Assembly: GCF_033153115.1 (NCBI RefSeq)
Contig: NW_026889779.1
Location: 13,888,001-13,952,000 of the forward strand
From: Saccostrea echinata
Lineage: Eukaryota
Direction of reading: 5' to 3'
DNA: 64,000 nucleotides
How positions within the stretch are numbered: the first letter of the stretch is position 1; the number at the start of each line of letters is the position of its first letter. This document shows positions 19,178 through 37,868 of the stretch, piece by piece. The position numbers were made by a program, and so were the translations under genes. The notes under the pieces are model-generated. The model was not told where the DNA came from. It searched no databases and saw only the letters and a program-made list of their open reading frames with translations.

Positions 19178-21590
19178 ATGATGCATAGAAGATACTTCTT
19201 TTTGCATCTTTTCTGTACAATCATTTTTTTAAGCCTTGGTTGTCATGGTGTCACGGACCGCACGCGTACAGACCGCGCAGTCGGACCTGAAATCGTGCAG
19301 GCTGTGGTGGACATAATCCGCGAAAATTGCATATATCCAAACGATAGGGTTTTTCTCAGGCGCTTGGCATACGTTCAGTCACAAGATGGACTCGATATAA
19401 GAACATTTCGACCCGATTTTTTCGGAGGCATATGGCAAGTAAGGAGGAAAATATTAAGTATAAACATTGTTATATTTCTTTTTGTAACAAAAGAGCAGTA
19501 AGGGAAACTGAATATTTTTTTACGAGATTATTTAATAGGAATATCACTACATCGATCGTTTAAGGACCTGTGAATGAAAAATCTTTCTTTGAGGTTAAAG
19601 AATCGGAATTCAATTCAACATCTTCATGTACTGGCTTGGAGCACCAATGTAAAATCATAGAAGACAAACTCAACATAGTATGGACAGACGTAGCCTGGGA
19701 AAACCTCACAGTGCCGCTGTATTCTGGATTGGCTGCCAGTTTGTTGCTCCAGATGAGGGCAAGGAACAATACCCCGGGGGAGGCAGACAAACAAGCGGAA
19801 TTCTGGGTCAACAACTACCAACATGGCAAAACAAAGACTTTTTATCTGTCAGAGATCCAAAAACTGGTTAGTGGTAAGGGCATATTATCAAAACTAACAA
19901 TTTATAAGATTCTCGCTTTTCATGACATTTACATACATAAACACATACAGAGGAGAGAGAGAACGAAAATCTTTGACAAAGAGTAGAAAACAATGAATAT
20001 TTACTTCAGTAGAAAACAATGAATATTTACTTCAGTAGAAAACAATGAATATTTACTTCATCTTACTTTATAGATACTTGTGAGATTGATTTAGCTTTCA
20101 TAGTGGACACCTCTGGAAGCATAGGATATTTTAACTTCATTGACATGTTGGGTTTTATGAAGAAAGTTACCCGTGGTTTGACAGTTGGACCTAGCAATGC
20201 TCAGATTGCCGTGGTGTCTTTCAGCGACACTGCCAGGATAGAGTTCCAGTTCGGAGAACATGAAGATCACACATCTTTGGAAAAAGCAATCAACTCCGTT
20301 AACTACGACGCAATGGGTACAGCAACAAGTGAAGGGATTAAGTTGGCACGGGAATCGATTTTCAAAACTAGCTCTCGGAAAGGCGCTACTAAAGTTGCAC
20401 TTGTAATTACTGACGGATCTTCGGACTCATTTCATGACACTGTTAAGGAGGCCAAGACAACACGGGAAGAGGGAATTGTACTTTTTGCCCTAGGAATCGG
20501 GAATATTAATAAGGCAGAGTTATATGCCATAGCGAGTCCACCAGACTGTACCCATGTGATCACATTGGCGGGATTTTCAGAAATCGACAATGTTGTTCAA
20601 GAAATTAAGAAATCGGCGTGTAGAGGTATGTAAAGGAAATGAATGAAGGAACATTTAGTAATTTCCCTTGTAATTAAAAACTACCACTGAGCTTGGAATT
20701 AATCTAACCTGATTTGGGGTTTCCGGGAAAATTGTTTTGAATGCAGGATTACCAGTACATGTACAAACAAAGTGTTAGCTTGGGGATTTATGTTTATATG
20801 CCATAAAATGTTCAATTTATCTCCAATGCATTGGCATTCCTTGGTCAGCATGAGGTTACCGGATCTTTGTTTATCGAAACATCCTGAAAACTACGTTACA
20901 GATGATGTTAATTTTAAAACATCCGGTTCTATGTAAAGCGCACGGCGAAGTTGTCATGTATTAGTAGATATCGCTTATAATATATTCAATTGTAGAGTAC
21001 TGGGTTTATGTAATATATTATATTAATTATATATTATAATATAATTCTGTTTTGAAATTTATTTTCTCTCAGATTTATGAATCTATGAAATGAAACTTAA
21101 GGATATGTACGCGAAATAGTTTTGAACTTTATATGCTTTTTCCCTATTATTGAAAAATTCCAATAAGTTAGGACATGCATGAGACTCATGATTCTGTACA
21201 TCTATTCTAAAACACATCTGTGGAAATATTACAGCTTAAACTGTAAGTTTGGATATTTTTATGCCCCCGGATCGAAAGATCCCGGGGGTATATTGTTTTT
21301 GTCTTGTCTGTCTGTCTGTTGTCAACTTTAACCTTGCCCATAACTTTTGATTGGTTGGAGCTATGACTTTCATATTTCACAGGTGTATTCCTTGTGACAA
21401 GACCTTTCTTTGGGTACCATCATATTTGACCTTTTGACCTTGACCTTGGAGTTTGACCCACTTTTGCAAAATTTTATGAGAATTTAACCTTGGCCATAAC
21501 TTCTGAACAGTTGGTGCTTGGGGTTTCAAACTTCACATGTGTATTCTTTGTGACAAGGCCTTCCTTTGGATACCAACAACTTTGACCTTT

Positions 21591-21621
<31 letters not shown>

Positions 21622-35900: not shown

Positions 35901-37868
35901 CGTGACAACGATAACGTACGTTAACAAATCAGGTGAGTGGGGGAAAACAACCTGTTTTTATGGCGGTTTGATCTAGAACTAGAGATTAATTATTGTTTCT
36001 TCGCTAGACACTTTAAGAGGTTTACTACATTGTAAGTTAGGTGTTGGCACGCCAAAGATCAATCACTGCTAATCTGGCACTTCACTTCAAATTTCTGGTG
36101 TCTTCATATGGGAGAGATGTAAAATTAGAGTATCTTAATTTTTAGCTCTACTGGTCAGTGACTAGAATGATTTTTACATTGGTAAGGTTCTATCGTCCGT
36201 CCGTCTGTCTGTAAACATTTTTTTTTTCAAAATACTCCTCCCCCTACAGTTTTGGTCCAACTTCAATGAGACTTAGTAAACAAGTAGACTACACTAAGAT
36301 ACATTCTATTTATTTTTATTCGATTTTTTTTTAAATTTTGATAGAAGGTGTCGCCATGTTTGCTATAAATTGATTTGGTTGCTTTGAAATTCCTTCAAAA
36401 CGCTTCTGTATTACAGTGGTCGGCCAATTTCATTGAGATTTGGTACACAAATAGACAATAACAAGATACACAATTATCGATTGATAATCGATAAACGAAT
36501 GATGTTTTCATGATTATTAAAAATAAAAATTGTTTTGAAATTCTTTCAAAACGCTACTTCTCCTACAGTTTTGATACAATTTCAATAGGACTTTGTTGAG
36601 AAGTAGACTATTCCTTATAATTCCCTATAACGGTCCTGGATTTCGACAAACTCTGTGCCATGGTTACTAAAAATAGAAAATTCTTTAAATTTCTTGAAAA
36701 CGCAACTCCTCCTACACTTTTGGTCTGATTAGACTTTTTACACAAGTAGATTATACTAAAAAACATCTTTCTTTTTTATAAGTACACACCAGTAGAGCTA
36801 CAGTCTCTTCAGAAACTTCTGTTTCCTTTTTCTGCTCAAAATATTTGGTGTTAACACAATTGTTATGTCAACACCCACCACAAGAGTCAAATTTCATTTC
36901 AGGAATAGAGATAGTATGCCGCCAAAACGGACATGAGCGTGAATGTACAAAACTTGACTTTCAGCTCCATGAGAAGTATAAGGATTACCTATGTAGTTCC
37001 TCAGGTAGCCTTTTTAATGGAAATTCAATACTACCCTTCAAATGTTTGCTTTCTTATAGAATAAAAGTTAGTCCTAAGGTTGAGGTCTGTTGAATGGATT
37101 AAAATCGTTATATTCAATTGTACGTATATTTCAGGTTTGGATGGGGCCCCGGTGCCTAACCCTTGTACCACAGAAGCTATTCAAAATAACGAGCTTTTCC
37201 ATGCTCATCCATATGATTATACAAAGTTTATCAAATGCGATTATCAGCATAAGATGTACATTACTCAATGTCCGCAGGGAGAACGGTATTCACAGGTACG
37301 GTACTGTTTTAATGAAGACAAACAGATTAATATGTCTTTCCATGTAGCTATCAAATTATTTGAGAATATTCAGGTTACTTATGTGCATATTTCAATTTGA
37401 AATATTTTGAATGTTTTTATTTTCTTTTCGATCTAACAGGGTTCTCATTCGTGCGGGTCTTCAACAACCACCAATACTGGAGACAAGATCCCGCTTGACC
37501 CGGATGTGAAAAATCCCTGCACTGCGCAGTCGCTAGCAAACCAAGAAATGTTCTTTCCGTATAGCAAAGATAACTCAAAATTCATCCATTGCGACGTATG
37601 GGGGAATGCATGGGTCATGAACTGCCCACAGAGATTGGTATGGAACCAAAACAATCATGCTTGTATTGAAGATACGCATGTATCGTCCAACCCCTGTATC
37701 CAAGACCAAATAGACCGAGGCATCACCATGTTTCCTCATCCAGACCCCCACAAATATATTCACTGCGACACTGGACTAAATGCATGGGTTCAGTCCTGTG
37801 TTGGAGGTACTGTGTTTGATTTTAAGACACAAAATTGTGTGTGGGAAAATGCACAGTTTGGTAAATAG
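32942..37868 (+). CDS. Paralogue C: secreted lysozyme-like domain (LES) + vWA + PPC-like + 3x chitin-binding-like repeat protein
   Basis: Exons 32942-33196 (start could be 32924 or 32960), 33311-33590, 33717-34265, 35310-35476, 35683-35932, 36903-37004, 37135-37295 and 37440-37868; MIDAS DESGS. Confidence 0.92.
34300..34352 (+). repeat. (TATAT)n microsatellite
   Basis: About 10 units read directly. Confidence 0.9.
34975..35283 (+). mobile_element. Full-length tRNA-derived SINE with Deu/Nin-domain-like core and (CAAA)n tail
   Basis: Pol III A box TGGCGCAGTGG (34986), B box GGTTCGAATCC (35049), core GTCCTTCGGATGAGACC..AAACCGAGGTCC, and 11-bp TSD ACAATTAGTCG (34964-34974 and 35284-35294). Confidence 0.9.
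36140..36825 (+). mobile_element. Helentron-type non-autonomous element with a degenerate internal array
   Basis: TTTTAGCTCTACTGG head with matching inverted CCAGTAGAGCTA near the end, (CCGT/CTGT)n, and repeated CTCCTACAGTTTTG units. Confidence 0.65.

Follow-up and report, generated by a model that had tools for sequence, protein, structure and literature searches.

Shell matrix proteins of the Pif/BMSP type are secreted mollusc proteins in which a von Willebrand factor type A (VWA) domain is followed by CBM14 chitin-binding modules; a survey of such proteins in lophotrochozoans places many VWA-CB proteins outside the Pif/BMSP clade and mentions no lysozyme-like domain at the N terminus (PMC11291548). 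Here we describe three tandem genes of Saccostrea echinata that are like Pif/BMSP in the order of VWA and CBM14, and in this order only, and that encode in front of these parts a domain predicted to have a lysozyme fold and homologous to the phage and prophage protein family phrog_3108. The genes lie in a stretch of 64,000 nucleotides (assembly GCF_033153115.1, contig NW_026889779.1, positions 13,888,001 to 13,952,000, forward strand), which we call the window. Its G+C content is 30-38%, the genome comprises 923 Mb, and the contig was named C30 in our analysis.

Three groups of known lysozymes are the closest points of comparison for the N-terminal domain. Members of glycoside hydrolase (GH) family 23, such as MltE, Slt70, phiKZ gp144, goose-type (g-type) lysozyme, and the chitinase of Ralstonia A-471, resemble it in predicted fold (Z 8-9.7) and in a helix-end Glu-Ser/Thr with G-x-x-Q about 20 residues further on, whereas no significant sequence or profile match to GH23 was obtained. 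Besides, the third SLT motif, A-Y-N-x-G, is not recognizable in the window family, in which Q-A-x-(F/Y)-W..Y stands in its place, whereas E-S/T and G-G-I-W-Q (G-L-T-Q in phages) are found at matching spacing. GH23 lytic transglycosylases need just one Glu, and g-type lysozymes also carry G-L-M-Q-V-D. Phage-type lysozymes co-opted by bivalves reportedly belong to a different family, of the T4 type (GH24), and consist of a single domain. The report on them (PMC5303276) provides a precedent for phage-related lysozyme genes in bivalve genomes. In the fungal muramidases of GH184 (8b2e and 8b2h), which are the best structural neighbors of the phage homologue that we modeled, the catalytic Glu (Glu41, proven by mutation) ends helix 2 and is followed by Asp66 (PMC10394673). 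The spacing from Glu to Asp is about 25 residues in GH184 versus 22 in the family described here, and instead of VWA and CBM14 the GH184 enzymes have a wall-binding domain that is SH3-like. Neither our animal profile nor our phage profile matched 8b2e or 8b2h at E<=10 in a search of PDB sequences, so that this likeness is structural only.

The three genes are located on the plus strand at positions 19178-25371 (gene 1), 26921-31181 (gene 2), and 32924-37868 (gene 3) of the window, and their stop-free segments align block by block. A first-pass annotation, made from the letters of the window, had read them as eight-exon paralogues with identical intron phases, and this was confirmed: each gene has eight exons, all introns run from GT to AG, the phases are 0,1,1,0,1,1,0 in all three genes, and zero in-frame stops were found in an exon-by-exon check. 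Exon borders were placed by eye from the DNA and from alignments of paralogues and homologues and were then verified arithmetically for each exon; the window genes were searched exon by exon. The predicted products of genes 1, 2, and 3 are 725, 749, and 736 codons long, respectively. The sole run of N in the region, an intergenic assembly gap at 25999-26127, lies outside every reading frame, since gene 1 reaches its stop at 25371, ahead of the gap, and gene 2 has its ATG at 26921, beyond it.

The lysozyme-like domain, about 155 amino acids (aa) in length, is encoded by the first two exons. Exon 1 (19178-19438, 26921-27181, and 32924-33196 in genes 1, 2, and 3) starts with a hydrophobic stretch that, judged by eye, is predicted to be a signal peptide in each gene, and it continues with the first half of the domain, ending in gene 1 at a GT donor in phase 0. 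The start of gene 3 is ambiguous among the in-frame ATGs at 32924, 32942, and 32960. Exon 2 (19594-19873, 27387-27666, and 33311-33590) encodes the second half. The motif quoted in the first-pass annotation, FLRRLA(F/Y)(V/L)(E/Q)S.DG ... GGIWQ, then W..LT.PLYSGLAASL ... P ... QA.FW..Y, was present in all three genes, with E or Q at the Glu position. The same annotation had called this domain the most conserved part of the protein, which is true for the half in exon 1 (78-84% identity between paralogues; nonsynonymous divergence [dN] 0.10-0.18) but not for the half in exon 2 (49-51% identity; dN about 0.4), which is conserved no better than VWA and less than the last exon. Synonymous divergence (dS) was saturated in nearly all exon comparisons, whereas the exons that encode domains had dN values of 0.1-0.45, from which we conclude that the duplications are old and that purifying selection acts on all three copies.

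Known domain models did not recognize this domain. Exons 1 and 2, searched singly, had no match in Pfam, and NCBIfam likewise contained no match for the domain. No meaningful match was obtained when the exon pieces, the animal profile, and the phage profile were compared with PDB sequences by phmmer and hmmsearch. The Pfam SLT model (PF01464; cut-off 21.3 bits) matched neither the window exons nor anything in a six-frame scan of the genome itself, and no match to the Pfam models Lys and Destabilase was listed for the window exons or for 58 family members.

The domain is, in contrast, homologous to the phage and prophage family phrog_3108. In a tblastn search of 50,697 phage records with P0024, a stand-alone animal member of the family, the best match was a 203-aa open reading frame (ORF) of an uncultured jumbo phage (5e-10), and further matches were found in Pseudomonas phage PSA28, Salmonella phage PMBT28, Klebsiella phage phiKO2 (Gp54), and several other Klebsiella phages. 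The matched proteins belong to phrog_3108 (E 4e-53), which is listed as of "unknown function," and the phrog_3108 profile in turn detected P0024 (E 9e-15) and 37 of the 58 animal members, at best with 4e-33. The link holds for the window itself, because a hidden Markov model (HMM) built from 40 phage and prophage proteins only matched exon 2 of genes 3, 2, and 1 with 39.1, 30.4, and 21.0 bits, respectively, at profile positions 62-139; searched alone against the PHROG library, the window exons gave no match at E 0.01 or better. Sequence homology extends over about 120 residues with the same predicted fold, and both sides share the helix-end Glu-Ser/Thr, G-x-x-Q-(V/I)-D, and, in many animal members, the C-terminal A-x-Y-W-K-x-x-Y-N-T..GKGT. 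These matches, and the lack of any Lys, Destabilase, or SLT match above threshold, agree with the first-pass proposal of a phage- or bacterium-like family rather than an animal c-, g-, or i-type lysozyme. The two sides differ in context: the phage proteins are single-domain proteins of about 165 aa without a signal peptide, encoded beside a holin and a spanin, whereas the animal members are secreted, their genes have introns, and most of these proteins are fused to VWA and CBM14.

The phage family itself had no match in Pfam, NCBIfam, or PDB, and all named members of the phrog_3108 type that were retrieved, from Klebsiella, Pseudomonas, Shewanella, Vibrio, Photobacterium, and others, are annotated as "hypothetical protein," including those of PSA28, PMBT28, and K21lambda1. 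In these three phages, phrog_3108 is preceded by the small terminase and followed, in this order, by the holin (phrog_785, 1e-25), the Rz-like spanin (phrog_89), a small overlapping ORF, and the large terminase. Genes of phrog_3108 beside a holin and an Rz-like spanin were located in loci L018 (3902-4396), L019 (3842-4330), L021 (2402-2899), and L022 (611-1108), from records MZ089737, NC_005857, MG641885, and OY978848. The complete, PHROG-annotated genome of K21lambda1 contains an annotated holin and no annotated endolysin, and in phiKO2 the holin-like Gp53 (101 aa, three hydrophobic segments) is encoded directly upstream of Gp54. Based on their position next to holin and spanin, the phrog_3108 proteins are probably the endolysins of these phages. 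The Enc34 endolysin family (PMC8943055) was weighed as a candidate relative and dismissed, since no sequence link was found.

To assess the fold, models were built on two homologues, namely, the animal protein P0024 (alignment of 58 sequences) and the phage protein P0389 of PSA28 (alignment of 40 phage and prophage sequences only). Both models were all-helical: the AlphaFold2 model of P0024 had a predicted local distance difference test (pLDDT) score of 92.2 and a predicted template modeling (pTM) score of 0.84, and the AlphaFold model of P0389 had a pLDDT of 95.2. The top rows of a Foldseek search of PDB with P0024 were the GH23 chitinase of Ralstonia A-471 (3w6d, prob 0.95), MltE, phiKZ gp144, and g-type lysozymes, and the top Foldseek matches of both models include GH23 and GH19. 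A VIA search of 48,161 chains with P0024, which does not depend on Foldseek, gave 50 listed matches, almost all of which were of the lysozyme superfamily, spanning GH23, GH73, GH19, GH184, GH124, GH134, c-type, i-type, lambda lysozyme, and others such as alpha-lactalbumin; the best was MltE (4hjy; Z 9.1; root mean square deviation [rmsd] 3.6 over 125 residues). With P0389, the 50 matches listed by VIA were again almost all of the lysozyme superfamily, headed by the GH184 muramidases 8b2e (Z 11.3; rmsd 2.7 over 120/141) and 8b2h (Z 10.7) and followed by phiKZ gp144 (9.7) and MltE (9.1). The animal c-, g-, and i-type lysozymes were distant structural neighbors in VIA (Z 5-7). In a protein language-model search, the nearest named clusters were GH134, SLT, and c-type lysozyme, the nearest overall being phage-rich unnamed clusters (0.94), and the best structural match in BFVD was an uncultured phage protein (E 1.6e-5; template modeling [TM] score 0.68). 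The individual Z values are moderate, but two independent models agree on one superfamily; we infer a fold of the lysozyme superfamily for the exon 1-2 domain, closest in these predictions to the GH23 lytic transglycosylases and chitinase and to the GH184 muramidases. The lysozyme-like fold proposed in the first-pass annotation is thus upheld at the level of homologue models.

The lysozyme-like domain belongs to a large, unnamed family of invertebrates. A profile of eight exon-2 pieces from this genome, searched against 1.84 billion proteins, retrieved 819 representative clusters at E<=1e-3. Members were found in bivalves (Argopecten, Mizuhopecten, Saccostrea, and Tegillarca), in gastropods (Haliotis, Patella, and Batillaria), and outside the molluscs in the annelid Owenia, the starfish Acanthaster, and two mites, a taxonomic range that is to be taken as a minimum. 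VWA is present in 36 and CBM14 in 22 of the 58 members with the full domain; further members consist of the domain on its own, as secreted proteins of about 190 aa, or contain two or three domain copies in tandem. Such tandem copies, with or without VWA, were observed in P0001, P0014, P0018, P0032, P0065, P0005 (Owenia), P0009 (Acanthaster), and P0013 and P0004 (mites). The existing labels of members are "uncharacterized," "matrilin-2-like," "cartilage matrix protein," and "collagen alpha-6(VI)-like," because only the VWA domain has been recognized in them. One candidate, P0041 (1,245 aa; repetitive and rich in His, Thr, and Cys), gave 16 partial matches to the exon-2 profile and a match to Pfam Phage_HP1_Orf24 and was rejected as a low-complexity artifact.

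The genome of S. echinata contains five further copies with the same split between exon 1 and exon 2, making eight copies on four contigs (C30, C3, C28, and C56). Two of them, both of which keep the Glu, are located 10.4 Mb upstream on the contig of the window (C30:3510391-3511845 and C30:3517007-3517911; loci L006/L016 and L008/L012). The Glu position is occupied by Ala in the copies at C3:3278975-3279514 (locus L004/L014) and C28:4718508-4719063 (locus L007/L013) and by Gln in the copy at C56:2813494-2814025 (locus L005/L015). Full-text searches of the literature for the architecture, for homologue accessions, and for phage-derived lysozymes in bivalves retrieved no description of the family or the architecture, and papers on metazoan g-type lysozymes and on arthropod chimeras arising from horizontal gene transfer do not mention the architecture. 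We regard the domain as a variant of the known lysozyme superfamily that is new at the level of the family, in a domain architecture that is new in animals.

We examined the relationship between the animal and phage domains in an unrooted maximum-likelihood tree of 134 domains, filtered for redundancy at 62% identity and constructed with the window's own rows left out. All 33 phage and prophage rows fell on one side of a single branch (Shimodaira-Hasegawa-like approximate likelihood ratio test [SH-aLRT] 97), and all eukaryote-type rows fell on the opposite side. The jumbo-phage protein was sister to the remaining phage and prophage rows, and the VWA-fused group of molluscs formed a supported clade (99) nested deep among the eukaryote-type rows. 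The animal sequences are therefore not nested within those of the sampled phages but separated from them by one split of an unrooted tree. Since the family is present in several animal phyla and its genes possess introns and signal peptides, any transfer must have been ancient and not recent. The wider lysozyme superfamily is overwhelmingly prokaryotic, which makes an ancient transfer from a phage or bacterium a plausible origin.

The remaining parts of the proteins correspond to a matrix-type architecture. Exon 3 (20074-20625, 27893-28444, and 33717-34265 in genes 1, 2, and 3) encodes a VWA domain (PF00092) with Pfam E-values of 2e-41, 7e-37, and 7e-37, respectively, and the metal site D-x-S-x-S is intact, the exon 3 translations reading D-T-S-G-S, D-G-S-G-S, and D-E-S-G-S. 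Exon 8 (24946-25371, 30759-31181, and 37440-37868) encodes two full copies of CBM14, also known as ChtBD2 (PF01607), at 49-52 bits (cut-off, 22.1 bits; E 8e-13, 7e-14, and 9e-14, two stretches each), followed by the stop. Exon 7 (24213-24355, 29585-29745, and 37135-37295) encodes most of another, N-terminal CBM14 module, which scored below the cut-off with 17-19 bits (18.9, 19.4, and 16.8 bits) because an intron cuts it; three CBM14 copies are also present in the Haliotis homologue P0016. The VWA domain and chitin-binding repeats reported in the first-pass annotation are thus both recognized by Pfam. Between VWA and CBM14 there are a variable linker, encoded by exon 4 (22913-23085, 28548-28765, and 35310-35476), which in gene 1 is 28% identical to its paralogues and in gene 2 is rich in Thr, Ser, and Asn, and a conserved Cys-containing domain of about 115 aa, encoded by exons 5 and 6 (23258-23885, 28976-29480, and 35683-37004). 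The exon 5 part of this middle domain is at 23258-23498, 28976-29225, and 35683-35932, and the exon 6 part is at 23784-23885, 29376-29480, and 36903-37004. Its motif is C-G-(I/V)-V-(H/Q)-V-Y..(Y/F)-D-N-P-H-P-S ... V-C-R..G.E-R.C-T-K; single-exon searches yielded no Pfam match, and the language-model search gave a weak lead to PPC/UPF0669-type domains (0.81).

Whether the lysozyme-like domain could act as an enzyme depends on its putative catalytic residues. The proposed ES...GIWQ motif holds in so far as the second long helix of both models (residues 54-63 in P0024 and 25-43 in P0389) has the Glu at its C-terminal end, in an E-S/T ... G-x-x-Q arrangement, but it fails in one paralogue, since the Glu is present in gene 2 (V-E-S) and gene 3 (L-E-S) and is replaced by Gln in gene 1 (V-Q-S). 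In a joint alignment, the columns of phage A-A-E-T ... G-L-T-Q-V-D correspond to those of animal V-E-S ... G-G-I-W-Q-V-D. All 40 aligned phage and prophage sequences have the Glu of A-A-E-T, and the Q and the D in G-L-T-Q-V-D are likewise invariant among them. Across 90 animal domains, conservation of the Glu is extensive and yet incomplete (E in 73, or 81%; Q in 9; A in 3), with replacement in 17. With their Glu retained, genes 2 and 3 could use a single-Glu, transglycosylase-like mechanism, as judged from sequence. Gene 1 is most likely noncatalytic by the same reasoning, and the residues found in genes 1, 2, and 3 at the Asp of Q-V-D (Lys, Gln, and Glu, respectively, so that gene 3 alone has an acidic residue there), together with the Gln of gene 1, imply that not all copies are likely to be enzymes.

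On balance, it is probable that these genes encode secreted matrix proteins whose phrog_3108-related lysozyme-fold domain cuts a glycan containing N-acetylglucosamine (GlcNAc) where the Glu is kept and is held in place by VWA and CBM14. In this reading, the three genes are old tandem duplicates for extracellular-matrix proteins composed, in order, of a signal peptide, the lysozyme-fold domain, VWA, the variable linker, the Cys-containing middle domain, and three CBM14 modules. The phrog_3108 proteins would serve as endolysins of their own lysis cassettes, and the animal domain would have kept the phage-type glycan-binding cleft. The products of genes 2 and 3 may then cleave a GlcNAc-containing polymer, either peptidoglycan or chitin, while CBM14 and VWA may hold the domain on a chitin-protein matrix of the shell, the gut lining, or mucus. 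The product of gene 1, with Gln in place of Glu, would most likely bind glycan without cutting it.

Several observations weigh against this reading, and we consider them together with the explanations that they favor. In the eight genome copies, the Glu position is E in four, Q in two, and A in two, the copies with Q or A being otherwise well conserved, and the 17 replacements among the 90 animal domains point in the same direction. The Asp of Q-V-D is present in only 50 of the 90 animal domains, and genes 1 and 2 of the window lack the second acidic residue. Moreover, the most invariant positions of the animal family are P123, S126, Q148, and G-G-I-W, and not the Glu, and gene 1 is under purifying selection despite its change from Glu to Gln. 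These findings would fit a lysozyme fold kept for glycan binding or structure, that is, a pseudoenzyme similar to alpha-lactalbumin within purely adhesive or scaffolding proteins, for which a fusion of VWA and CBM14 is typical in structural matrix proteins (PMC11291548). Retention of the Glu in the large majority of animal domains, in all 40 phage and prophage sequences, and in genes 2 and 3 argues against this, and so does the established requirement of lytic transglycosylases for one Glu only. We regard a wholly noncatalytic module as unlikely. Somewhat less likely still is that the domain is devoted to trimming chitin or chitosan in the CBM14-bound matrix and has no antibacterial role. The Ralstonia A-471 GH23 chitinase and GH19 chitinases are among the top Foldseek PDB matches of both models, and three CBM14 modules are present on the same chain; however, the phage homologues are encoded in lysis cassettes, where the substrate is peptidoglycan, and the structures nearest to the phage model are muramidases.

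The structural evidence also has weak points. No Foldseek match in PDB reached E<=0.001 (E-values 0.2-1; TM 0.4-0.5), and for a helical protein Z values of 8-11 are moderate; models of this kind often reach Z 8-13 by chance. An hhalign comparison with MltE of E. coli, either the single sequence or a profile of 109 EmtA orthologs, was not significant (probability <1%), and the EmtA set (Neff 1.7) was not diverse enough to serve as a fair template; both weak runs put E-S on E-S and the Glu on the catalytic Glu64 of MltE, with the +2 register that the range of the structural alignment also has. A Pfam SLT match was obtained in 1 of the 58 family members, and it was below threshold (second domain copy of Owenia P0005; 17.8 bits; E 0.0026). 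The endolysin role of phrog_3108, too, is read from gene order only. A chance helical arrangement with an unrelated function nevertheless seems very improbable, given that two models from nonoverlapping alignments produced near-identical lists of about 50 lysozyme-superfamily proteins and little else, that GH134, SLT, and c-type lysozyme emerged independently from the language-model search as the nearest named families, that the phage homologues adjoin holin and spanin, and that the E-S/T ... G-x-x-Q-V-D motif agrees with GH23. Finally, the similarity to phage proteins might suggest a recent horizontal transfer or a bacterial or phage contamination of the assembly. This is already refuted and deserves almost no weight: a phase-0 intron splits the domain, which is spliced to animal VWA and CBM14 exons and preceded by a signal peptide, eight copies reside on four contigs, homologues occur in four phyla, the dS between paralogues is saturated, and animal and phage sequences are on opposite sides of one well-supported branch.

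Some features of the surrounding DNA were also recorded. Intron 3 of gene 3, which precedes the linker exon, contains a repeat-like insertion (34300-35300) with minus-strand ORFs at 34968-35225 and 35149-35301, whose peptides are similar to one from locus L004 (2181-2414), which lies on a different contig and adjoins another member of the family; the insertion looks like a dispersed mobile element. Upstream of gene 1, on the minus strand, there are a 152-aa ORF resembling a retroelement fragment (18054-18512) and a 361-aa ORF, rich in Gln, Pro, and Ser, of an unrelated gene (13537-14622).

More broadly, we tentatively propose, as a possibility that falls short of probable, that these proteins represent an undescribed class of animal lysozyme-like enzymes, apart from the c-, g-, i-, and GH24 types, which shares ancestry with the unrecognized phage endolysins of phrog_3108, is widespread in invertebrates, and typically acts as an antibacterial or matrix-remodeling muramidase or transglycosylase anchored by VWA and CBM14. 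If true, this would also name the missing endolysin of phages like PSA28 and PMBT28 and of those like phiKO2. If the domain is active, phrog_3108 would be an endolysin family that fills an empty slot in several phages of Klebsiella, Salmonella, and Pseudomonas, and invertebrates would possess one more large family of proteins that cleave peptidoglycan or chitin, at present entirely without annotation. The natural paralogues with Glu changed to Gln and to Ala in one genome constitute a series in which the path from an enzyme to a binding module can be studied. An active domain would thus bear on mollusc immunity, on the biology of the shell and gut matrix, and on the debate about gene flow from phages to animals.

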